DNA from: Caecitellus pseudoparvulus | Taxonomy: Eukaryota; Protista; Bigyra: Bicosoecida | Direction: 5' to 3' | DNA: 15,257 nucleotides | Assembly (NCBI GenBank): GCA_965644315.1 | Contig: CBFFRQ010000174.1 | Coordinates: 1 to 15,257 of the forward strand | Shown: in pieces, positions 13 through 15,257 of the stretch | Layout of the letters: each line of letters opens with the position of its first letter | Numbering within the stretch: the stretch's first letter is position 1 | Position numbers and translations under genes: made by a program | The notes under the pieces: model-generated | What the model was told of the DNA's origin: nothing | Databases searched by the model: none | Seen by the model: the letters and a program-made list of their open reading frames with translations, nothing else

Positions 13-18
13 AAAAAA
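13..18 (-). terminator. RNA polymerase III oligo-T terminator of the tRNA-Ile gene
   Basis: AAAAAA on + is TTTTTT on -, 3 nt downstream of the tRNA discriminator base. Confidence 0.85.
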
Positions 19-21
19 CAG

Positions 22-94
22 TGGTCAATCGGGGTCTCGATCCCCGGACCAATCGCTTATTAGACGAACGCTCTACCGACTGAGCTAACCGACC
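22..94 (-). tRNA. tRNA-Ile-AAT: tRNA-Ile, anticodon AAT (eukaryotic type, A34 normally edited to inosine), no intron, no encoded CCA
   Basis: Reverse complement reads GGTCGGT TA GCTC AGTCGGTA GAGC G TTCGT CT-AAT-AA GCGAT TGGTC CGGGG ATCGAGA CCCCG ATTGACC A. This is a 73-nt cloverleaf with acceptor stem GGTCGGT/ATTGACC, D stem GCTC/GAGC, T stem CGGGG/CCCCG, discriminator A73, A-box TAGCTCAGTCGG and B-box GATCGAGAC (fits GWTCRANNC). Confidence 0.95.
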
Positions 95-120
95 GTGTCA
101 TAAGTGAGGGCCTAAATTGC

Positions 121-1212: not shown

Positions 1213-1688
1213 ATGCCGAGGAGAATGATGAAACGCCACAGTCACTGCTCAGAGTTCCCGAGCACCCCTACCCACACACTCCAGAGAAGAAGGGCCCATA
1301 CTCCCAAGACATTAGTTTCTGAGCTGCTTGCGCTTGCTGTGCTGGCACTGGCGCTTGCCTCGTGCGAGGCCTCAGGGAGTTGCGAGTCTGGCTTCGTGAA
1401 AGTGTGGTTGGCAACGTACGGAAAGCACCTGTGCTTTCGTCTTACGCCAATCACCACATGGGCTGGAGCAGTTGCTAAATGCCAAGAATATGGTGCCAAA
1501 CTAGCAATCTGGGAGAGTGAACAAGGTGCGCAAGTCTTTCAAGCTTTGATGGTCACGCAAGCTTTCAAACAAGCGCATACACAACGATCTGTCGCAGACA
1601 TGTTTGACACAATGGCCCGCATGCCATACCAGCATTACTATTGGACTGGATTCATGTTCAATGGCCATGCAGCAATACCTTTTGGGTG
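1213..1688 (+). CDS. Exon 1: signal peptide and N-terminal half of C-type lectin-like domain 1
   Basis: Hydrophobic LLALAVLALALA followed by CESGF..LCFRL...TWAGAVAKCQEYGAKLA...YYWTGF, a typical CTLD N-half. Ends at donor TG|GTACGT. Confidence 0.85.
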
Positions 1689-4600
1689 GTACGTGTGCTT
1701 TGGTTCGTAGCCTTGTGGAACTGTAGAACAACCCAAGCTGGCCCTGATTCCTCGACAGGCAAGTACCGAGCTATTCTGAGATGCCAATGACGATGCGCGG
1801 TTGTCCAGGGAATACCTACTGGATGAAATGCCACTCTGCCTCGGCTATCAACAACGCTATATTCTTTGGATCTCAGTGCATAGTTTTCTCAAGGATCGTC
1901 CACGGGGGTTGGTTTGGCACGAATCGGCTAACAAACCACGGCTGCGGCAATGCGCACCACGGGCTCTGCATGAAGCCGCTCCCAGTCCCCTCAAGGACCC
2001 GTAAGGCGCTAGCCTCTCGCTTCTATCTTGAAGTCCGCTGAACTCCTCGTCGCTGATTGCGCAGCTACTCGAACTCCAACACCGACTCGGACCCCATCTC
2101 CCTCCCGCACCCCATCTCCCTCCCGCACCCCGTCTCCCTCCCGGACACCATCCCCTTCTCGTACACCAACTCCGACCGTCACACCCCGGCCCTTCACCCA
2201 GCCAGCCCAAGATGCCCATGGCGCCGCCCACTGTCCGCCTGGATTCAAGGCACAATCCCCCTACTCTGGCGCATGCTTCTACATCGGGCACAAGATCGAG
2301 TTCAAGTCCAAGGACGAGTCGGCCCGGGAGTGCGCCCAGCACTACCCTGGCTCCACCCTCTTTGCACCCAACTCGTACGCTGAGCTGCAGTGGTTCCAGA
2401 CGCAGTTCCTGCAGCCCCGCATGCCAGCTCCCTACAACCAGTGGCACTTCTGGCTCAACGCAGAGGTGGACGTGACCCAGGGCAACAAGCAGGTTTGGGT
2501 CTCTGGCTCTGCGACTGGCGATGTGGACGACATGCTAGATGCAGGGAGCGGCAAGTGGACGTATGGGCCGCTTCCAGGCCGCCCTTGCCTCCGCACGGAG
2601 CCATCATCCGACCTGCACTCTGCCTACTGCAACACGGGGGGCACTGCGACAGCCTGTGCCTATCGCCCCATCGGTTGCCCCGCTCGTTGGACTCCTCACG
2701 GCACAACGCTGACGTGCTGGATTCACCTGGATGTCTTGCCACCCGCCAAGTCCCTGGATTCTTGGGCATCCCTGCGTTCCCAGTGCCAGGGCGATGGCGG
2801 GGAGCTGGCCCACCCCACAGCCGATTGGAAGGGCGGCACGGTGGGCTGGCCGTGGCTGGAGCATGTGGTGCTGCAGGACTTCAAGCCAGGGGCGCCTCGA
2901 GCTGGACAAAGTGTAGCTGTTGGGGCTGCGTACAACGTGCAAAGCACTCGGTGGGAGTGGCTAGATGATGCTGGGACGCCTGTGCCAGCTGTACTTTGGG
3001 CGCCTTCACACCCAGACCTCGACATTGGTAGCTGCGCCAAGTATCAGAACGGCAAGTTGTACTCGGTGGACTGCACAGAGAAGGGACTGTTCGCAGATGG
3101 CGGCTTCGCATGTGTCGCTCCGCCGCCGCACTGCCCAGACGGCGACACAGTCAGCCCCATCACAGGGCAGTGCATCAAGGTGATCACAACCACGGTCGCC
3201 AACCATGCAGACATTGATGCCGCTTGTGCAGCTGCTGTGCCACCTGGCAGCACACGCCAAGCAGCCCCTGCTCGTGTATGGAGCGATCTGGAGAGCAGGT
3301 GGTGGAACGCCCATGTGGACCACGTTCTGGGGCTGGGTGGCCCTGTGTGGACGGGTGGATACATCAACAGTGGCACGTTGCACTGGAGAGATGGAGCAGG
3401 TGCCGTGGCGGCCTTCTCCGTGGGTGTGTCTAACTCCAACTCCCTCGGCTTGGGAGACATCTCAGGCAGCGGGGACGGCTGCATCGGGACATCAGACCAC
3501 ACTTCTAACTCCCTGTCAAGGCTCTCGTGCAGCACGCCAGCTTTCACCGCCTGTGAGATGCTGGGCACCTGTCCACCCGGCTGGTACCGCTCCCCCATCA
3601 CAGGCACGTGCTTGCAGCTTGTGGCGGGGCCATCTTCCCTCTCCGCTTCTCGCTCAGCTTGCAAGGCTGTGCATCCCCGTGCCCAGCTGTGGAGTGCCCA
3701 CGACCCAGTGGAGCTGACCCTGGCACACCACGTCTTTGGCGTCAGCGGTATCGGAAGCGGCGCATGGGTGGGAGTGCGTGCCAACCTGCGCAGCGGGGAG
3801 TTCGAGTGGGAAGACGGCGCAGATGCAGCTGGACTGTGGGCGAACACGGGCGCCCTTGCAAGCGACGGAGGGCGGTATGGCGAGGGCAGCTTGTGGGCTG
3901 TGGACTCCACCACTGGCGTGCCGCTTGCCGGCTTTGGTGGCGGGCGGTACGCTTACATGGACGCAGCTGGGCTGTTCCTGCGCACCACGTCCAACGCGAA
4001 CACTGGACGGGCATTCATCTGCGAGTACATCCCGCCCTGTGATCTGCAAACGGCACAGACGGTCGGCACAAACCCAACCCTGCACAACTTCCACGCCCCT
4101 TCCAGCACCTGTGTCTTCACAGTGCCGGCTGGAGTGCACTTCATCCTCATCAAGGCACGAGGTGCTGGAGGTGGATCGCACCTCATCCACACCCAGCCAG
4201 GCGGAGCAGGTGCATACGCCTCTGGCTACATTGCTGTCAAAGGCGGGGATGAGTTCATCGTGGAAGTGGGTGGGCACCGCATGGGATGGAACCACGCCAA
4301 CGAGGCTGTTCTCGCGGTGGAGACCTCCAGCGCGTTCACGTACACCAACCTGCAGGGATCTGGCCTGGGTGGACAGCGCTCTGGCGTCCTGGATGGCCGT
4401 AGGCTGCGCTCTGACGTAGCTGTTTCATACACGTCTGAGCTGCTCGTGGCAGGTGGAGGTGGAGGTGGTGGAACAGGCAAGGGAGGAGCAGGCGGTGCTC
4501 ACGATGGAGGGGACGGAGAGGCAGGCCTGCAGTCCAAGTCGGGGTCGCACTTCTTGGTGGCGTACGGAGGACAGGGAGGCACGCTGGCCACGTCGAACCT

Positions 4601-7600
4601 CGCAGGTTCCCTGCAAGACGCTGGCTTCGGCGCAGGCGGCATTTATCGCGGCACTGACCAGCGCACAGCAGACAAGTGCCCGTGGGGCGTGGGCGGTGGG
4701 CGGAATCGAGCTGGTGTACCAGGCTGCACAGAGTTCCGTGTGCGCACCAGCGGAGGGCAGGGCGGCGGCGGGCACATGGGCGGAGGAGCTGGGTCAGCTG
4801 GCGGAGAAGGGGGCTTCCGCGCGGAAGGTCTTGCGAGCGTTGTGGGAGGTGGAGGAGGCGGCACGAGCTTCGCCTCTGACGCCCAAGTCCAATTTGCACA
4901 GCTGCTTGGCGGGTGGGAAGACATTCCCGCCTTCCCCACCGAAGTGCATCGCAGCGCCACAGGCGGCAGAGCCAAGCTGCTGCGGGGGCACGTCATGATC
5001 CAGACTATCTCCCAGCAAGCGCTCCAGTGCCCTTTTGGGGCCCGCTATCGCATCGCCCAGCCAGGCGTACACACCGTCACCTCGCCTGTGGGCGCCCTGG
5101 CGGCAGATGTGCGGCTGTACGGAGCAGGTGGCTCGCCTGGAGCGCTGGATGTGGGGTTGCCTTCCCCTACATCGCCTGGCACCTGCCTGGGTGGACCAGG
5201 TGGCTTCTTCTACGGCCGCATGGAGACTCTTCCAGCGACCAAGCTGGCGTTTGAAGTCGGCAAACCTGGAGCGCTGTTCGCCAGCTCCACAACGCTGAGC
5301 GGTGTGAACCTGGGGTATGGCGTGTCGCCGAACCCGCTGGGAGATCCGTCGTTCTCAGCTAATGGCACAAAGGGTCACACGATCGGCTTCCCCATTGCTC
5401 CTGGAGGCGCAAGTCGCATCAATCGAGCTGGAGGCGGCCGCACGGCGCTGTGGGATCCCACGCGAAGAGATGAGATTGCAGTCGTCGGTGGAGGTGGAGG
5501 CGGCGCATACGGCACTGCAGAGTGCTCTGCAGGTGGATCAGGAGGCGGCATTCTCGGCGGCACTGCGCCTTCCATTGGCTCAGGCGCTACAGCTGTGACG
5601 GGCGGCGAAGGTGCTTGGGGCGGCGGGCCAGGCATCGGCGGAGTTGCCACGACGCCCACAACTGGCAATCTGGGCCAAGGCGAGGATGGTGACCGCATTG
5701 CAGGCGGAGCGTATAATGGCACAGACTGCAATGGTGCCACATGTGCCTCCTACGTCCCCAGTGGTGGGGACGGCTTCTATGGCGGCGGCACTGGCGCTGC
5801 CCGCACCTCCACGGCAATGACAGGTGGAGGAGGTGGCGCGGGTTTCTACCTGACTGACTGGATGCTGACCGAGGACGGACACCCAACGCCTGTGCTGGAA
5901 CAAATGGGGCAGACTGTGTCCACGCCCCAGCCTGACACGTACGCTGGCGCGCCTGGCATCGCAGGCGCAGTGGACGTCAGCTTCCGCTGCACTCGGTGTG
6001 TGGAGGAGGACAGCTGCTCCATCCTGGACTTCTACGGCGAGCGCCAGTGCTACCCATACCTGTCTGACAAGCCGCGGGAGTTCCCAGAAGATGTGCACTC
6101 CTCGTGCTACTGGTGCGACCCCGCAGGCCCGGGCGCCTTCATGATGTGGAGCCAGAAGGGCGTCGGCACTGCCTGCAATGACGACCTCGCCTGCACCTTC
6201 CGGGACAACTGCACTTCCAACGGTCTATGCCAGGGCCAGCTGTACAAGACCTGCCTCATGGAGGAGTGGACCGACGACCCAGCGCAAGATTGCGAGGTGT
6301 GCGACGGCCTGGGAGGCTGCAACTTGGCGCCAGGCTACACCGGGGGCGTGAAGTCGCTGCCGGGTGGAGGGAAGACGTGTGCTTGCGACATCGGCGGCAC
6401 GCTGTACGCTCACGGGGAGGTGAACCCCGCTCAGCCCGAGTGCCAGTACTGCGACGTGATTAAGGACCCAGCTGGCTGGAGCAACCGCCCCAATGACCTC
6501 GCATGTGATGACACTGATGCCTGCAGCTACGATGATCAGTGTGTGTCTGGCATTTGCACGGGCACGCCGTACACGTGTGACGCCCAGGACTGCCACGTAT
6601 CGTACACTTGCAATGGGGACGGCGGCTGTGACGAGGTGCGGTTTCAGCCCGAGGATGACCACCACTGCAACCAAGGGCGCGTGTCCGAGTGCCGCCTGGC
6701 CCCCACTTGCGACGGAACCCGTGCGACGTGCCCAGGGTACTCGGCTGCACAGCCGTTGCAGTTCCCCTACGTGGCCTTCGGCGCAGTGTCCTCCTTGTAC
6801 ACGACCCATGACCCACAGAAGACGTACTCTGCGCTGTCCACTCAGCTACGAGGCGCGTCAACAGTGCATGCCGGCATGGCGGTGAAAATCGCAGACTTCG
6901 ACGTGCGCTGTGACAGCTTGACGGCTCGACTGGGCCTGCAGCGCATCTCCACCGCGTCAGACATTGCCAGCTGCAGCGGCTTCTACACTGACGGAGATGC
7001 CACTGGCACTATGCTGCAGTGCCCAGGCGGGTATGTGTTGGTCCTCGGCGCAAACGGCACGTTTCCTTCCTGCATCAAGTACGTGAGCAGTCCAGCGTCT
7101 TGGGCAGCGGCTCAAGCTTCGTGTGCCGCAGAGGGGGGCTGGTTGGCCAGCACAGCGCTGCACGATGACGTCAAGCGGGAGACGGTTAGTTCGCGCTGCT
7201 TCGCTGCTGACATGGCGTGTTGGCTTGGCATGAGCGTGCAAGCGCCGAGCACGTGGAGCGCTACCCAGCTGACGCCGCTGAGCCCTGGCGACACGGCAAG
7301 CATGCTGCCGCTTCTAAATGCTGCTGACTTGACCAGTGCCGCACCAGGGACTTCCCTCGGCCTGGCCTCAGGCGTAAAGGGCTTTGACACGGCGAGTCTG
7401 AACGTCGGCGTACGAGTGCAGCCAGTTGGGAACGCGCTGCCGTTCCTGTGTGAAACTGGCGTGCGCAACTGCCCTCCTGGCTTCCACCTGATGCCTGGAG
7501 CAGACGGTGTGCCCAAGTGCCTGGGAACAACTGCCTCACCTGTCAGCCTGTCTGGTGCCCGTGCAGGGTGTGAGAGCGTGGGCGGACTGCCGTTCGCTGG

Positions 7601-10600
7601 TATTGGACTGAGCACTCTGGAGACGGCAGCCGCATCCCGTGCATGTGGAGAGGCAGGGGCACAGTGCTGGCTGGGGCTGCAACGGCAGGTGTCTGAACCT
7701 ACAGGGGCTTCTTCGTGGCTGGCTGACACTGGCGGACATGCTCTGCATCAGTTCCCGATCGGCCCACTTGCTCCGCTGGATACCCCGGCTGGAGCTTGGT
7801 TGGTGCGATGGCGAGACGCCACTGCTGCCTCCAACGCAGCCAACTCAGCCAGCACAGCAGGCATGACGCTGCACGCAGCCGATGGCGTAGTGGACTTCCA
7901 GTCGTCTGTCAGCGCAAGCTTCCCGGCCATGTGTGAGGCGCCTGTCTTCGGGTGCCCAGCTGGGCACATCTTGGTGACTCTCAGCGCAGGTGAGATGGCC
8001 TGTGCCTTCACCAGCGCTGCCACGACCGAAGGCGACGTCGCCGACGTGCAGTGTGCGCTCGGCGGAGGCGTCGCGCTCCCCGTGCCATCTCAGGCTGTGC
8101 TGCATGCCCTCGCGGCGCTGTGCCCAACTGACATCTCACCCTGCTGGACAGGGCTGTCAGATCGCGTGGAGCGGCGCACGTGGGTGAGCAAGTTCAGCCC
8201 GCACCAGCTCGGCACTGCCGCCCAAGCAGCTTCACGCTGGCCGTGGACAGCAGACCCGAACGCGGTGCCGGATCTGGACTGTGCTGCCATGCAGGCCAGC
8301 GCCACGGCTGCGCCTCGCCTGACTGCTATGGACTGCTCCACACCTCGACGGGCTGTGTGCACCCGTCCGCCACAGCAATGCCCTCCAGGGCACTACGTCA
8401 GCGTGTCGTGGGCTCTGGACACCACCCTCGCCGCGGCAGGTGTGCGCATGCCGACGTACTCCTGTGTCCACGCCGTCACGGCAGCCAGTGCTGCGCTGCA
8501 AGACACGCTGCCAGCTCGAGCCAACCCTCGCAGTGTGTGGGTGACGCAGCTGGCGCCGCTGGTCGTGCAGAGGGCGCGCACTGAAGCTGCCAAGCGGGCC
8601 CCAACGCTGGGCTTCGAGCGCCTGGGCCAGCCCAATCCGCTCATCATGCAGATGCCTCGGTCTCTGGCACTGACGCAGGGTGTGCAGTACAAGTGGGTGC
8701 TGGACACACGCACAGTGGAAGGTAACGCTGCAGCGGTGTGCTCCCAGCCCTTCACGGTGGATGTGACGCCCCCTGTGCTGCTTCCTGACGCCCCCACCGC
8801 GAGCCCTCGAGGCGGTGTGCGCGAGGTGGACATCGCAACGTACCAGTTCAACATCCAGGACGACACAGCAGACATCGACTACACCGGCGTGAACGTGCCG
8901 TCCTGGCAGTGGAACGGCTTCCAGGACGCCGAAAGCACGGAAGGCGGCCTCCTTGCGTACCAGTTCTGCCGCACAGTCGCCACGCCAGACGCCAGCACGT
9001 GCAACCCTTTGGACACAGGCGTGCCGCTGGGGCAGTGGCGGGACGTGGAGCCGTTTGGCGTGCACAGCCTGCCGCAAGACACCATGACCCACGGCCAGCA
9101 GTACTTCGTGCACATGAAGGCCACAAACAAAGCGGGGCTGTTCCGCGTCTCGAGCTCAGATGGCGTCATCTTCGACGCCACGCCGCCCACGCTGCAGAAG
9201 CCTCGCGACGGGCCACAAGCTGGCTCGCTGACACCCGCTGACATCGGAGGAGACGGCGCCACGAACGACCTGGACTTCACCTCCAGCACGACCACCTTCA
9301 CTGTGCACTGGCCAGAGTTCACAGAAGACGTGTCTCCGCTGGTGAAGTACGAAGTTGGGCTTGGCTCGGTGCTGGGGCGGCCAGTGGACAACATCGCAGC
9401 CACCATGAACGTGGGTCTGGCGCGGGAACACACGTTCACGGTGCCCGTCGCTGTCCGCAGTGGTACATATGTGTACGCTTCTGTGACAGCCACGAATGCG
9501 GCTGGGCTGAAAACGACTGGGCTGTCTGATGGCATCCTTGTGGACACAGCCTTGCCGGATGTGTCCCTCTCTGTTCTGGCAGCGCCAGGGTCGGCTTGGG
9601 CTGGCTATGGCATTCCCGCCTTGCTGGGCAAGCCAGACAGCTTCAACGCCACCCAGCACGCTGTGCAGTCCGTGGCGAGTACGACATCCATGCGAGTCGC
9701 TATCACTTTCGCCGACACGGATGCGGGCTTCTCCGCCTGCCGAGTGGCTGCTGGAACTGAGGAGTCCCCCACTGCTCACTCGCCCTTCACTGTGGCACAG
9801 TCAGAGGTGAGCAGGTTCAGCCTGCATGGCCTGCTAGTGCTGCGCCAAACGTTCACGTTGACCTTCGCCTCGCCACTCCCCGATGCCACTAAGGTGCACA
9901 TGCGTGCCAGATGCCTGGACCGCGCAGGGAACACGGGTCTGTCTGAGTCCGTGCCGCTTGACATCGAGACCAGCCGCCCATCAGCTGCTGCCGCGTACGT
10001 GAACGACGTGGACGCCACGCGCGACCTGGATGCTGACCAAGACGGGCATGTTCAGCCCATTCTGGAGGCTGTCTGGGGCGGCTTCGACGCAGACCAGGCC
10101 TCCATAGTGTCATACCTGTGGGGCATCTCCAGCTCAGCGCCTGGGCCAGGTCCAGACCTGTCGGCCCATCCACTCGATGTGCTGCCGCTGACGTACGTGA
10201 GCTCCAACACGACTGCCAAGACGAACCCCGCTGCTATCGTGCTAGCCCATGGCACGACGTACTACGTCGTGGTCCGTGCCGTGGCCTCCAATGGCCTGTT
10301 TGTGGATGTCGCCTCAGACGGCGTGGTGTTTGACGGCACTGCTCCGGAGCCTGCTCCAGGTGGGGCTGTTCGAGACGCCGTGCCTGGCGTGACGGGTGAA
10401 GCCGCCTTCACTGCCTCAGCGAGCGAGATGCGCGGGACCTGGGATGCCTTTGTGGAAGATGTGGGGGCGGTGGCCAAGTACCAGTATGCGGTGCGTTGGT
10501 GCGACAACGGCGACGTGGGCAGCCGCGACGTGCGGGACTGGACCGATGTGCCAGGGGCGACAGTGACCACCTTGCACGCGACTGGCCTAGGCCTCACCAG

Positions 10601-13600
10601 CGGCCTTCGCTACTGCTTGCAGATCCGGGCCGTGAACAACGTCGGCAACCCATCTGCCCTGCTAGAGTCGGATGGTGTGATGGTAGACACGAGCCCGCCT
10701 GTGGCAGGACCAGTGTGGAACACCCTCACTACGTTCGTGGATGCGCCGTACCAAAGCCACAAGGACAACGTCAGCGCCAGCTGGCAGTGGACGGCGGCGC
10801 CGGCCTTCAGCGCGTGGGTGGATGAGGAGTCAGGGCTGACTTCCTTTGCCTGCTGTGTTGGGACCAGTGCAGACACTTGTGACGTGGCGCCATTCAGCAG
10901 CGTCGGCCTCGCGACCTCCTGCACTGTCCCTGCTGCGCTTGTGAACGCGGAGAAGTACTACGTCAGGGTGCGCATGACGAACGGCGCGGGGCTGAGCTCT
11001 GTGGCCCCTGCGGCAGGCGTGGTAGTGGACAGCACCGGCGCAGTGCAGGTGGATGGACGAGGCGTGCTTGTGGAGCCGGAGCCTTCCCCTGTGCTGGCCA
11101 CGTACACCAGCTCGGACAAGCACTTGGAAGTTGAGTGGAGTGTACTGTCAAACACCCTGGCGCCACCTGGGGAAACCTGGACCAGCACGGGGGACACTGA
11201 GAACGGCACAGCTGTGCCGCACTTCACCTTCCAGTGGGCCCTGGGCACTGCTGCGGGCGTTGGAGATGTGAAGGCGCTGACTGATGTGGGCACAGCCACA
11301 CATGCTAGTGTGTATGGCCTGACCCTCACGCCTGGGATGCAGTACACTGCGACCGTGGTTGCTCGGGCTGGCACAGCCACTCGTGTGCACTACGCCCACT
11401 TCACGCCTGACGTGACGGCATCTGCCCCCTCCAACGTTTCCATCTCCCACGCCATCAACTTGGCTGCTTCAGGGTTGCCTGAAGTCTTGTACGTGGCGTC
11501 ACTGAACACCATGGCCGCGACGTGGGGCGCCTTTGAAGATGCTGAATCAGACGCAGCCTTGACAACCTACACAGCTGCGCTTGGAACGCGGCCGTACGGC
11601 CAGCAAGTGCGCGTGTTTGAAGACCTGCAGCACTCGCGCAATGTGACCTTCTCAGATTTGGAACTGGTGCAAGGGCAGGAGTACCACCTCTCCCTTGTGG
11701 GGCTGAACGCAGCCGGACACGCCAGCACGACGGTGTCCAGGATCGTCATCCCTGATGTCACACCGCCTCTCCCAGGCAGTGTCTGGGACGGCGAGAGCAG
11801 TGACTTGACATTCACCAGCACCAGTACTGCATATGCCTGCTCCTGGAGCGGCTTCCGAGATGACGTGTCCCCCATCGCGCACTACTCCATCGTGCTGAAG
11901 CTGGGCTCCAGCGAGGGCGCAGCTGCCGCTGGGCCAGCGCACGTCCCAGTCTCCAGCCCCACCACACACACCTTCACCTTCCCCCCAGGCAGTGAATTGC
12001 TCAATCAGCAGCGCTACACGTGCTCTGTGACGGCTGTGAACGCTGCGGGGCTGAGAACCACGGTGCACTCGAACGGCGCCGCCGTCATCACGAGCGGTCC
12101 CACAGGCGGCACGGTGTGGGACTCACCACATCCAGGAGTGGACGATGCGTTCACGCCTGACTGCTCCCTTGTGCAGGCGTCATGGGGTGACTTCTTTGAC
12201 GCAGCAGGCGTGAGCAAGTACGAGTGGTGTGCGGGGGACGCCCCTGGGCAGTGTGACATCGTGCCTCGCAGCTCGGTCGGGCGCCGCACCTTCGCACAGG
12301 CTCGCAAGTTGACACTGCAGCCAGGCCAGGCTGTATTCGCCACAGTGTGGGCCACAAACGCGGCTGGCCTCGTGACGGAGGTGTCGTCTGACGGCATCGT
12401 CTGTGACGACAGCGAGCCTGACGTGGCTCATGACATCCGCCTGCAGAGTGCGCTGCTCGGCATCGTCCCTGTGAGCTCTGACCGCACAACGTGCGGATGT
12501 GTTCAGGAGCATGCTGTGTTTGTCCCCGACTTCACCGCAGGTGGAGGCATGTGTGTGTGCGAGACAGGGTACGAGCTGAACGCCGTGACGGGTGCTTGCG
12601 AGCCGTGTGCTGGTGCTTGCAGTGCTGGCCCAAGCGTGCCGCCTCCGCCCACTGCGCCTGGGACATGTGCTCCAGGCACCTTCAGCCACAGCGGCAGCTG
12701 CACGCCTTGTCCTGCAGGCACCTTCAAGGCCGGCACAGGGGACTCCCTCAGTCTCTGTTTGCCCTGCTCTGTGCCTGGGCGAGGCGTCAGTCCAGCCCTG
12801 GCACTGAACGTGACGGCTGCTTCCGACAGCCAAGCGGCCCTTGCGACCATGCTGCACGCCATGGGCTCCAGTCTTGGCGGGCAGCAGGTGCTGCGGGCAG
12901 ACGGCTCCGCGGTGGTCTTGGCCCCTGGCGCAGACGTGAGCAGCATTCCCCTCCTTGTGCCTGGGCTCGGAGCCCTGCAGCACGGCCAGCGTGGCTACTC
13001 TGGAGTTGCACTGGGCAACTCCGCTGGTCGCGTGTCCAGCATTGCCATGATTGCTCCTGCTGTGGATGCCACTCCACCCAAGGTGCAGGCGGTGTGGGAC
13101 GTGGCAGGGCTGGCGCCAGGTCCCCTTGCACAGCGTGTGTCTGCCACGGCAGATGCGCAGCTCGTGGCTGGTGGCACCGCGACCATGGCTTGGCTGCGTG
13201 CACGAGACGCCGAGAGCGACATCGTGCAAGTGCAGTGTGGCTGGGGCAGCACGCCTGGTGCAGCTGACATTGTGCCTCTCTCTGATGCGAATGTTGAGGG
13301 GGGCGTTAGCGCGGGGAACTGCTCGGCGGCACTGCCCAGCGGCACGTCTGGGTGGGTGTACGGCTTGCTGCGACTGGTGAGCAGTGCGGGGCTGGTGACA
13401 GACACGGCAACAAGCGGCTTCGTCATCGCAGGTGCTGGGCCGGCCCACATTGCTGTTCGCACGGGAGCCCAGTGTGCCGCTCGACTGGGCGGTGTGGCTG
13501 GCTTGCCCAGCGAAGCCTGGAGCGGTGGAACCCAGGCAGTGTGGGGCTGCTGGCTGGTGTACGACGCTGAGGCCGCGACGGCGTCCACTGCTCTGAGCCA

Positions 13601-15257
13601 CTCTGTGGGCTTGTGGGACGTGCAGGCATCGCAGTGGCTGGCGCCGCTGCGCAGTGTGGGCTCTGCCACGAGTGCCCAGTGGAGCTTGGCCTGTTCAGGC
13701 GACGAGCTATGCCTCAGCAAACCGCTTGCGCCAGGTACAAGATACGAAGTTGTGGTCCACAGCGCCAATGCGGCTGGCAGTATGTCGGAAGGCCGCAGCG
13801 GCGTCGTGCAGGTGGCAGCGGATGAAGCTGGGGTTGCCGTGGAGGTTGTGGATGCTGCACAGCAGAGCATGCGCTTCAGCGCTGATGTGACGCACGTGCG
13901 ATTCACTTGGACTGTCACCTCCAGCTCGCCTCTGCAGTCAGCATTTGCCACGCTGGGCCACATTGCAGGCGCCACGTCACAGGCACTTGGTGAAGGCATT
14001 GCCCTGGACGCAGCAACTTGGAACACCTCCAACCCCAGTCCAGGCGTGTACGTGACTCGTGGCACTGCTGCATTTGCAGGCCTGGAGCTACAACACGGCA
14101 TGGCGGTAGTGGTGAGCGTGCAGGCGCAGACTGAGGATGGCCGCCGTGCCGTGGGCGCTTCCCTGCCCGTGTTCATGGATGCGCCGTGGTCTCCGCCAGC
14201 CTGGTCCGGCGCTGTGGCGATGCTGGATGGGGCCTGGTTCGGCACGGCTTCGCTGCATGCGGGCTCGGCTGCCGAGGCTGTGGCACTTGCTGGAGCTGCA
14301 GTGGGCGGGATGGACCGGGTTGTTGCTGCCGCACTGTCGCCTGACCTGGCCAGCAAAGACTCGAACGCGTCGTGTGGAGCACAGCTGCAGAGCCACCTCG
14401 TGGTTGGGGATTCAAGCGCAGGCGTGTCCTTGCGCCTGCCAGTGCCCACGGATGACATCAGTGACATCACCGCGCACGAGGTTGCGCTCATCCACGGTCC
14501 GTTGTTGGATGGCTCGTGTGACGGTGGGAGCTTCTCCTCCCCGCAATGGCACGCTGCTGGCGAGGCTGACTTCGTGCAGCTCAGCGCGGATGCCACCTTC
14601 TTGACGCTGCCTGCCTCAGCCTTGGATGGGCGCGTGGCTGTGTTGCTCATGCGAGCAGTGAACGGCGCCGGGCAGCAGTCAGTGTACACATCGCCACTGC
14701 TCGTCTTGGACGGCGATGATGCACGTGTGCGTGACCAATCCCCACAGCCTGACGCGCCGTCCATCCCAGTGCCGGTTGTCAGTGCCACCTGGGCACCCCC
14801 AGTGCAGCGCTGGGTGCAGAGTGGCTCACGGGATATTGCCTTCCGCCTGCCACTGGTTTCGGCTGTGTCTGTGCCGCTGCAAGGCATGGCGTGGACGCTG
14901 CTCGCTGTGTCACCTGCGGGAGACGAAGTGGTGGCGCAAGGGTCCGTGGCATCGCACGAACTGCTACAAGTGGCTTCCGCCTCGGAAGGACTGCTGCAGA
15001 GCGTGCCTCTGGATGCCGCTTTGGCAGCTGCACAAGGCTTCCGAGTTCAAGTCGTGGTGAGCAAGGCGGGAGGCGGGCTCCTGCAGCTGTCCTCCCCCAC
15101 TGTGCGCCTCGTGCGCTCACACCCACTGCCTGGCACACTGGCCCTGCTCCCAGATGCGGAAGCATGTGGCACCACTACTGCTGCCTCCGTGTCAGCTGCC
15201 GCACTGCAGGAAGCTCTGCCGTGGACCCGCACCTTCCGCGTGTCTTCGCTCGCCGCG
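1213..15257 (+). CDS. Giant secreted/cell-surface multidomain protein (8 C-type lectin-like, 2 ALK/LTK-type Gly-rich, Cys-rich, ~17 FN3-like repeats); join(1213..1688,1759..2000,2065..>15257), >=4637 aa, 3'-partial
   Basis: Splicing out two canonical introns joins the 165-aa ORF (1213), the 1781 ORF frame and a frame (codons starting at multiples of 3) that is open from after TAG 2010-2012 to the window end. The junctions read ...AIPFG-W-QVPSYSEMPMT... and ...PVPSRT-P-TRTPTPT..., and they complete a lectin domain. Recognisable extracellular domains run throughout. The ORF track lists no ORF in this frame after 1100, consistent with no stop. The start could also be ATG 1225 or 1228. Confidence 0.9.
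1324..1371 (+). other. Signal-peptide h/c region (LLALAVLALALASCEA|S) after a long basic n-region
   Basis: 12 consecutive hydrophobic residues, then a small-x-small (C-E-A) cleavage motif just before the first lectin cysteine. Confidence 0.75.
1689..1758 (+). other. Spliceosomal intron 1 (70 nt, phase 2)
   Basis: Donor GTACGT, branch-like CTGAT at 1744-1748, acceptor GACAG. Contains an in-frame TAG (1708-1710). Removal restores the frame and a Trp codon. Confidence 0.85.
1759..2000 (+). CDS. Exon 2: C-terminal half of C-type lectin-like domain 1
   Basis: Encodes ...SQCIVF...RLTNHGCGNAHHGLCMKP, supplying the C...C-x7-C pattern that ends a CTLD. Confidence 0.85.
2001..2064 (+). other. Spliceosomal intron 2 (64 nt, phase 1)
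   Basis: Donor GTAAGG, branch-like CTGAT at 2053-2057, acceptor CGCAG. Stops occur in all three frames (TAA 2002, TAG 2010, TGA 2039). Removal joins PSRT to PTRTPTP seamlessly. Confidence 0.85.
2065..15257 (+). CDS. Exon 3: >13.1 kb uninterrupted coding exon (~4,398 codons), runs off the window
   Basis: No stop found on hand translation of the frame starting at ACT 2067 through GCG 15255-15257. The protein domains are continuous. Small in-frame, stop-free introns cannot be fully excluded. Confidence 0.92.
2073..2180 (+). repeat. 18-nt coding tandem repeat encoding a mucin-like (TP[S/T]P[S/T]R)n linker
   Basis: ACCCCATCTCCCTCCCGC occurs twice exactly (2091-2126), followed by two synonymous variants (2127-2162), giving TPSPSR x4. 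Flanked by TPTPTR (2073) and TPTPTV (2163). Confidence 0.9.
2232..4028 (+). other. Four tandem C-type lectin-like domains (2232-2663, 2676-3116, 3132-3557, 3570-4028)
   Basis: Each starts CPx(G/R)x (CPPGF, CPARW, CPDGD, CPPGW). Each has a WIGL-like motif (FWLNA, VAVGA, VWTGG, AWVGV), a WxDG-like motif (WVSG, WEWLDD, HWRDG, FEWEDG) and a terminal (A/I)C (ACAY, FACV, TACE, FICE). Confidence 0.85.
4080..5984 (+). other. Two tandem glycine-rich domains of the ALK/LTK GRD / Gly_rich type (~4080-5003 and ~5043-5984)
   Basis: Copy 1: FTVPAGVHFILIKARGAGGG..GGAGAYASG..VKGGDEFIVEVG..GGQRS..LLVAGGGGGGG..GGGGHMGGG..GGGGGGTSF..GHVMI. Copy 2: VTSPVGALAADVRLYGAGG..GGPGGFFYG..LAFEVG..GGGRT..IAVVGGGGGG..GGDGFYGGG..GGGGGAGF..GAVDV. 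The motif order is that of the polyglycine-II bundle domain. Confidence 0.8.
5988..6734 (+). other. Cysteine-rich block with Dictyostelium CTDC-like repeats and a disintegrin-like C-terminal loop
   Basis: CNDDLACTFRDNCTSNGLCQG (6174), CDDTDACSYDDQCVSGICTGTPYTC (6504), CDIGGTLYAHGEVNPAQPECQYCD, and CNQGRVSECRLAPTCDGTRATCP (6666-6734). Confidence 0.7.
7020..8363 (+). other. Three tandem C-type lectin-like domains (7020-7454, 7470-7937, 7953-8363)
   Basis: CPGGY..SWAAAQASCAAEGGWLAS..CWLGM..PFLCE; CPPGF..ARAGCESVGG..CWLGL..PAMCE; CPAGH..CWTGLSD..DCAAM..MDC..AVC. Confidence 0.85.
8664..15257 (+). repeat. Array of ~110-170 aa fibronectin type III-like beta-sandwich repeats (one half repeat, 16 complete, and the start of another)
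   Basis: Recurring consensus GxVxD...W.xF.D.ES.I..Y...GT..G..D[VI]...L..G..YY..V.A.N.AGL....SDG..[VF]D.TPP. Repeat ends at about 8774, 9188, 9557, 9980, 10346, 10700, 11042, 11423, 11768, 12101, 12419, 13079, 13442, 13829, 14195, 14723, 15125. Visible only at the protein level. Confidence 0.8.
12492..12767 (+). other. Ephrin-receptor-like / GCC2-GCC3 (TNFR-like) Cys-rich module
   Basis: CVCETGYELNAVTGACEPC followed by CAPGTFSHSGSCTPCPAGTFKAGTGDSLSLCLPC, matching the C.PG.F..CxxCPxGTF/YK..G...C..C pattern. Confidence 0.75.

Follow-up and report, generated by a model that had tools for sequence, protein, structure and literature searches.

What kind of protein is encoded by a reading frame that fills most of a contig and runs off its end without meeting a stop codon, and what might such a protein do for a unicellular eukaryote? 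The question is raised by contig CBFFRQ010000174.1 (C174) of the stramenopile Caecitellus pseudoparvulus (assembly GCA_965644315.1, 30.6 Mb in 215 contigs), which at its entire length of 15,257 nucleotides (nt) is the window analyzed here. An earlier reading of the letters alone (henceforth the original prediction) had proposed a single spliced gene for a mosaic surface protein of more than 4,600 residues, built from C-type lectin-like domains (CTLDs), glycine-rich domains (GRDs), a Cys-rich block and fibronectin type III (FN3) repeats and acting as a glycan- or prey-recognition adhesin or receptor. We find that the gene belongs to a family of giant paralogs with conserved bodies and differing N-terminal heads, and we consider it probable, though far from certain, that it represents a multigene family of secreted mosaic proteins of ~5,100 residues, each a constant body with an exchangeable head, that serves as a recognition or adhesion repertoire.

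The long frame lies on the + strand in frame 3 and is open for 4,415 codons, from position 2013 through the last base of the contig. Computed from base composition, a run of this length without a stop has a probability of ~1e-51, and the frame displays coding-type GC periodicity (GC1 0.65, GC2 0.58, GC3 0.70). It is missing from the program-made list of open reading frames (ORFs) because it runs off the contig end. The 5' part of the gene is a 165-codon ORF that starts with an ATG at 1213, and three exons of compatible phase (1213-1688, 1759-2000 and 2065-15257, the last open to the contig end) together encode 4,637 residues. Judging from the close copies of the gene described below, which are named by their contigs, the window probably holds the 5' 90% of the gene, and the full protein would have ~5,100 residues. 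The features at the 5' end are:

1213..1688, + strand: exon 1, encoding a basic N-region, a hydrophobic core and the N-terminal half of the head CTLD
1689..1758, + strand: intron 1 (70 nt), with donor GTACGT after 1688 and acceptor AG at 1757-1758
1759..2000, + strand: exon 2, encoding the C-terminal half of the head CTLD, with 72% amino acid identity to the C44 copy and the frame kept
2001..2064, + strand: intron 2 (64 nt), with donor GTAAGG after 2000 and acceptor CAG at 2062-2064

The C44 paralog supports this splice model, since the donors and acceptors of both introns are conserved and the exons are 77-80% identical to those of the window, while the interior of intron 1 has diverged (50% identity, one 1-nt indel). 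The C37 and C146 copies are without intron 2, and their head is contiguous with the body ORF. Pfam searches with the upstream ORFs and the gaps between units of the window gave no match. The single spliced frame of the original prediction was thus borne out: its three exons join in phase and stay stop-free to the contig end, with neither a stop nor a frameshift, either of which was held to refute it, across the 4,415 codons of the long frame. Could the frame nonetheless lack a function or result from faulty assembly? The gene is cut by the end of a short contig, and family fragments that are truncated or stop-bearing do exist; however, the improbability of the open frame, a ratio of non-synonymous to synonymous substitution rates (dN/dS) of 0.03-0.35 over many copies and a domain order kept down to 29% identity in other organisms strongly disfavor this explanation, which after these tests we find hardly credible. 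For annotation there is a warning here, in that 15-kb genes of this kind break assemblies and escape ORF tracks. At the 5' side of the gene, an 89-nt stretch (window 13-101) is 96% identical to C40:2262-2350 and represents a short dispersed repeat.

Downstream of the head, the window encodes the following modules:

2070..2201, + strand: Ser/Thr/Pro linker (TPSPSR)n, the junction where paralog similarity begins
2232..4022, + strand: four tandem CTLDs (units 2-5), from Pfam and a 7-unit alignment and profile
3984..5951, + strand: two tandem ALK/LTK-type GRDs (GRD1 3984-4940, GRD2 4938-5951), from PF12810 and a fold model
5934..6986, + strand: Cys-rich block of ~350 residues with an internal duplicated unit
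6954..8426, + strand: three tandem CTLDs (units 6-8), from Pfam and the same 7-unit alignment and profile
8622..12419, + strand: FN3-like array A, 10 units, with a ~170-residue gap at exon 3 residues 2497-2668
12399..12836, + strand: Eph-receptor/TNFR-like Cys-rich module inside the stalk
12813..15257, + strand: FN3-like array B, 5 units plus degenerate ones, cut by the contig end

The CTLDs are identified by Pfam Lectin_C (PF00059), which matches exon 3 with an E value of 4.9e-16 and 59.8 bits summed, above the 22.6-bit cut-off; two single units score 23.0 and 23.1 bits, just past the cut-off, and three score 15-17 bits. Three Cys, one Pro and one Trp are invariant in the 7-unit alignment, and the profile made from it matches DEC-205, FcRY, PLA2R, LOX-1, NKR-P1 and DC-SIGN (9.8e-13 down to 1e-3). 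In the head, exon 1 residues 48-120 align to positions 4-73 of the CTLD profile, and the C-terminal half in exon 2, unscored by that profile, was recognized by eye from its Cys/Trp pattern. The FN3 stalk is likewise supported by Pfam (fn3, PF00041: E 3.4e-11 on exon 3, 43.6 bits summed against a cut-off of 25, best single unit 22.5), and a 14-unit stalk profile matches the FN3 domains of titin (1.8e-11), contactins, Dscam and fibronectin. The original prediction had counted ~17 FN3-like repeats; the stalk stands but the number does not, as a custom iterated hidden Markov model marks 15 units in the window. At 12399-12836, Ephrin_rec_like (PF07699) scores 23.0 bits (7e-5; cut-off 23.1) and TNFR_c6 (PF00020) 19.5 bits (1.3e-3; cut-off 29.4).

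The two GRDs place a paired ALK/LTK-type module within a eukaryotic lectin array, far from animals. ALK_LTK_GRD (PF12810) matches exon 3 with an E value of 1.9e-4, and the homologous GRDs of paralogs, 25-46% identical to those of the window, score 35.9-51 bits, while that of P0005, a relative described below, scores 82.5 bits. A low-confidence model of GRD2, built on nine paralogous sequences, superimposes on the GRDs of ALK/LTK with VIA-align Z scores of 10.1-10.9 over 187-211 residues (root-mean-square deviation ~4.2 Å, 12 entries); next come a cyanophage fibre at Z 6.8 and, at 5.7, a mycobacteriophage tail tip. In Foldseek, the top 21 rows for the model are all ALK/LTK entries. The GRD sequence profile found no ALK/LTK chain and nothing relevant among PDB sequences, and in a feature search the look-alike clusters with recorded taxa came from bacteria or viruses. 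The GRDs are therefore kin to PF12810 in its wide sense rather than to the animal receptors. With its stop-free gene, its modules identified by Pfam and profiles and its signal-like N-terminus, the giant extracellular mosaic protein first proposed is real, and its layout is as proposed, the binding region of CTLD and GRD modules lying N-terminal to a long stalk of FN3 arrays.

The gene is not a singleton. At least eight close and at least six distant paralogs are present in the genome. Six of the close copies are full, among them C146, C37, C44, C2 and C140, and have stop-free open frames of 4,897-5,544 residues; two (C122 and C45) are cut by contig ends. Counted from the start of exon 3, the close copies match the window protein at 97-98% of the first 1,500 residues, at 96-97% of the following 1,500 and at 93-96% of the remaining 1,397. 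Over the first 1,956 codons six copies align gap-free, with proportions of synonymous (pS) and non-synonymous (pN) differences of 0.17-0.27 and 0-0.03 and a dN/dS of 0.03-0.17; in the stalk, from 500 codons before the end of the window onward, the values are 0.15-0.29 for dS and 0.2-0.35 for dN/dS. The middle and 3' thirds of the copies were compared from search tables, supplemented by 3' loci. Given a pS of ~0.2 and the different heads, it is unlikely that the assembly duplicated a single locus; near-identity is seen only between C2 and C45. Beyond the close copies, a search with PF12810 brought up five more giant open frames, of 4,982-5,367 residues. The distant paralogs align collinearly with the window protein, at 51% identity over 4,386 residues for C86/C33 and at 33% for C27/C34; C66 is another distant member of the family.

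The genome also holds relatives and remnants outside this collinear set. A paralog of 5,248 residues on C56 (402558-418301) resembles the family in its CTLD-GRD region alone (28-29% identity) and has several predicted transmembrane helices at its end, making it a membrane-anchored relative of the secreted family. Fragments of the 3' part of family genes lie at C121:2345-4059 and 8198-9908, C74:64213-65934, C13:9575-9778, C55:298305-299251, C33:3-1276, C86:3-877 and C111:29816-32950. Several truncated 3' fragments carry an in-frame TGA or TAG, which suggests birth-and-death turnover or orphan cassettes. The C33 copy (C33:5387-6870) is 99.5% identical to C86 but loses the frame ~190 codons before the end, the rest lying in another frame, and could be an allele, a very recent frameshifted duplicate or an assembly error. 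An ORF with ankyrin repeats of ~38 residues lies 0.7-2 kb downstream of the C34 paralog.

The copies part company at the linker. At the nucleotide level, C146, C37 and C2 begin to resemble the window at 2112-2142, inside the (TPSPSR)n stretch; C44 is similar throughout, upstream region included. In searches with exon 1, head identity to the window is 66% for C44, 43% for C2, 35% for C146 and 34% for C37, and across the copies the heads comprise three unrelated CTLD types or, in one copy, an RCC1 propeller. In this copy (C140:14779-22200, minus strand), the first ~1,550 nt of the gene encode a signal peptide and a seven-blade RCC1-like propeller (PF25390 at 296 bits, RCC1_2 in seven stretches), fused in frame and without an intron to the same linker and body. 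A change of fold from CTLD to propeller cannot arise by divergence, so that recombination at the linker or close to it has exchanged the heads. Even heads of one type evolve fast: between the window and C44, dN is 0.18-0.24, dS ~0.48 and dN/dS 0.4-0.5, and the heads of C37 and C146 differ mainly in one 12-residue loop. The GC content is 0.52-0.55 in the head exons of the window, like that of the upstream intergenic DNA, 0.53-0.58 in the other heads and 0.64 in the body; the heads may owe their low values to a separate origin, or GC-biased gene conversion may have raised the value of the body.

This head exchange is the best argument for a recognition role, but recognition of what? Many copies that pair a constant stalk with a hypervariable distal domain would also suit self/non-self, mating or kin recognition, an option raised in the original prediction, with head variants mediating homotypic or heterotypic recognition between cells. 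Against this, all head types occur in one genome, as paralogs rather than alleles, and we saw no sign of a membrane anchor for signaling, so that we hold such a role to be improbable. In a bolder form of the repertoire idea, the family would be the cassette-style recognition repertoire of a bacterivorous protist, with a constant scaffold of 5,000 residues, non-animal ALK-type glycine-rich ligand-binding domains included, armed by recombination at the TPSPSR linker with alternative heads (CTLD types or an RCC1 propeller), each directed to a different class of prey or surface. We give this version an outside chance; if true, an innate "pattern-recognition" system would rest here on a principle undescribed in eukaryotic microbes.

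How the protein is held at the cell, if at all, depends on its two ends. A signal-peptide-like N-terminus, judged by eye, is present in every head. In exon 1 it consists of a 12-17-residue hydrophobic core (residues ~34-50) with a basic N-region before it and an A-x-A-like site after it, and it is the only strongly hydrophobic 19-mer of the protein (Kyte-Doolittle hydropathy 2.14); neither exon 3 nor the C-termini of the close copies contain a transmembrane-like 19-residue window (maximum 1.75). Seven close copies overlap the last 1.5 kb of the window at 92-93.5% nucleotide identity, and the close copies extend ~492 residues past its end with FN3-like units and then a Cys-containing tail. Seven complete C-termini, and that of the C86 paralog, end in ...VLCVAL, followed by a stop and sequence resembling an untranslated region (UTR). 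The 3' UTRs of the copies are of at least three types. A glycosylphosphatidylinositol (GPI) anchor was ruled out, as a C-terminal hydrophobic tail is not present, and so was a CaaX reading of the ...CVAL end, as prenylation is cytosolic and the protein secretory. Taken together, the sequences argue for a secreted protein rather than a classical receptor. The "receptor" label of the original prediction is unsupported, therefore, because the complete close copies and the 51% paralog have no transmembrane segment or GPI-like tail and end in ...CVAL.

The end itself is unusual in its conservation between subfamilies. Over the final ~175 codons, C86 and the close copies differ by a dS of ~0.2, compared with 1.2-1.5 upstream, and are as similar to each other as the close copies are among themselves. 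The C-terminal end (an FN3-like unit and the Cys tail) has been homogenized between subfamilies or is under exceptional constraint.

Many animal CTLD receptors are type II proteins with an uncleaved signal anchor, and the same could be imagined here, with the N-terminal stretch, the sole hydrophobic segment of the protein, retained in the membrane behind a basic cytoplasmic tail of 32 residues; indeed, the long N-region of the window is rich in Arg and Lys. However, the uninterrupted hydrophobic run is only ~12-13 residues long with the A-x-A-like site next to it, the C86 paralog has a short classical signal peptide and the variable head would sit beside the membrane. We thus regard a type II membrane receptor as very improbable.

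For the secreted repertoire favored here, the following mechanism can be proposed. The constant body comprises, in order, four CTLDs, two GRDs, a Cys-rich rod, three CTLDs, ~20 FN3 units and a Cys-containing C-terminal tail, with the Eph/TNFR-like Cys module interrupting the FN3 stalk. An FN3 unit is ~3.5 nm long, and ~20 of them would make a stalk tens of nanometers in length. The N-terminal head, joined through the (TPSPSR)n linker, may set ligand specificity, the lectin/GRD body may add multivalent binding and thereby avidity, and the conserved C-terminal module might tie the protein to the cell coat or matrix or mediate its assembly. With the family, the cell would then possess a small repertoire of molecules that recognize or adhere to particles such as bacterial prey, substrates or other cells. 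On the sequence evidence, recognition or adhesion of particles, prey or surfaces is the most likely role; a part in prey capture we infer.

Several points weigh against this reading. None of the eight CTLDs contains an EPN, QPD, EPD, QPN or WND motif, and with the canonical sugar-site motifs absent from all of them, glycan binding, as put forward in the original prediction, is unsupported. The window GRDs score 22.0 and, for GRD1, 15.8 bits, under the 24.5-bit Pfam cut-off, and the confidence of the GRD2 model is low (predicted local distance difference test score, pLDDT, 52; predicted TM-score 0.55). At 32 basic-rich residues, the N-region of the window is unusually long, which leaves a small probability for a type II anchor. 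The C-terminus was read from paralogs at 92-93.5% nucleotide identity and not from the window copy, and attachment through the C-terminal module is pure conjecture.

A purely structural role has to be considered as well, with the body polymerizing or packing into a cell coat, an adhesive holdfast or mastigonemes and the heads merely decorating it. The host is placed among the stramenopiles by its HSP90, whose nearest named counterparts are in oomycetes and diatoms (73-75%) and which has a 99% match in a marine-type metagenome assembly, and tubular flagellar hairs define this group. Purifying selection on the body is very strong, and the protein is secreted and anchorless with a conserved Cys-containing C-terminal tail that could cross-link. 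By contrast, an RCC1 propeller in place of a CTLD head and the fast evolution of heads point to varied binding, not to a uniform structural role. Moreover, the fold search brought up a single mastigoneme structure, at chance level (E 1.7), and known mastigoneme proteins are EGF-like and Cys-rich, which also counts against this alternative. We judge the structural role rather unlikely.

The molecular basis of prey and surface recognition and selection in heterotrophic flagellates is largely unknown, and here the family offers a candidate, open to test, for the means by which a unicellular organism distinguishes particles or partners. Its small, fast-evolving heads on a conserved scaffold are expressible candidates for binding to bacteria, glycans or cells. 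Among stramenopiles, the bacterivore Cafeteria burkhardae responds to starvation by up-regulating genes that encode extracellular adhesion domains (lectin, EGF, laminin; PMC7852580).

Within the body, the Cys-rich block is the part best conserved between distant paralogs. Pfam gave no match on 5934-6986 at E<=1, Dicty_CTDC and MopE-type repeats included. The block is confidently modeled (pLDDT >90 at residues 20-240) and without a solved structural relative: the PDB yielded none by sequence, the best Foldseek E value was 0.4 and the best Z score in a wide VIA-align search 2.5. The nearest predicted fold is that of a Myxococcota cluster (TM-score 0.42/0.53), 24% of whose members have Dicty_CTDC. 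Among 1.8 billion representatives, the profile of the block finds 1,898 proteins, and many of the best-scoring ones match in several stretches. An 85-residue sub-repeat recurs in 44 stretches of P0002, which is the one of these matches with a recorded source, a Polyangiales metagenome-assembled genome, and another multi-stretch match, P0009, carries MopE-type and Dicty_CTDC motifs; the link to these motifs is indirect, through hits of the sub-repeat that carry PF11617 and PF00526. Thus, a ~350-residue Cys-rich module, confidently modeled over ~220 residues, recurs in many uncharacterized giant proteins.

Is the architecture itself found elsewhere? A whole-length homolog search gave one weak match, P0001, confined to the Cys-rich block. 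Uncharacterized giants of 2,400-6,900 residues carry the whole block once, and three proteins from metagenomic or very fragmented assemblies (P0005, ENA ERZ27316688; P0006, NCBI GCA_024449685.1; and P0008, Logan) are collinear with the window protein over 1,700-3,200 residues at 29-30% identity. P0005 and P0006 (29% over 2,400-3,200 residues) carry two GRDs and the Cys-rich block, P0005 with a significant Lectin_C match in addition, and P0008 shares the Cys-rich block and the stalk. The gene 5' of P0006 (JAANST011383231.1, 1-2505) has a faint Lectin_C match and probably encodes the N-terminal lectin region that P0006 lacks, gene calling having split one giant gene in two. With collinear paralogs at 51% and 33% identity and homologs at 29% in other samples, the architecture is old. 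None of its modules is new, and giant mosaic proteins of an adhesin-like type belong to a known class. No named or characterized protein with the same architecture turned up in our searches, in keeping with the novelty originally claimed, and literature searches for it and for the accession of P0006 gave no relevant paper. What we found undescribed is this architecture, the tandem ALK-type GRDs in a stramenopile lectin array and the cassette-like exchange of heads across at least eight 15-kb paralogs.

Three known systems resemble parts of this design. The mannose-receptor family, whose members DEC-205/LY75, PLA2R and FcRY likewise carry tandem CTLD arrays in one extracellular chain, provides the best profile matches of the window CTLDs (7jpu/7jpt at 9.8e-13, 9wyt and 7qsr), and most CTLDs of this family also lack sugar-binding motifs. 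The known animal proteins have ricin-type and FNII domains before the CTLDs and one transmembrane helix with an endocytic tail after them; in the window, by contrast, Pfam found neither ricin-type nor FNII domains and there is no transmembrane segment, and the protein is ~3 times longer and adds GRDs, the Cys-rich rod and ~20 FN3 units. The ALK/LTK receptors combine their GRD with a kinase, a transmembrane helix, MAM and LDLa domains. No kinase (by Pfam), transmembrane helix, MAM or LDLa was found in the window protein, which has two GRDs in tandem inside a lectin array. In overall design, and with no homology found, the family recalls the polymorphic CdiA/Rhs proteins and the variant adhesins of protists and fungi, which also have a long conserved body, an abrupt switch of the tip at a defined junction and many copies and orphan fragments in one genome. 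Compared with CdiA/Rhs, however, the tip lies at the N-terminus, it is made of binding folds (CTLD or RCC1) rather than toxins and the host is a eukaryote.

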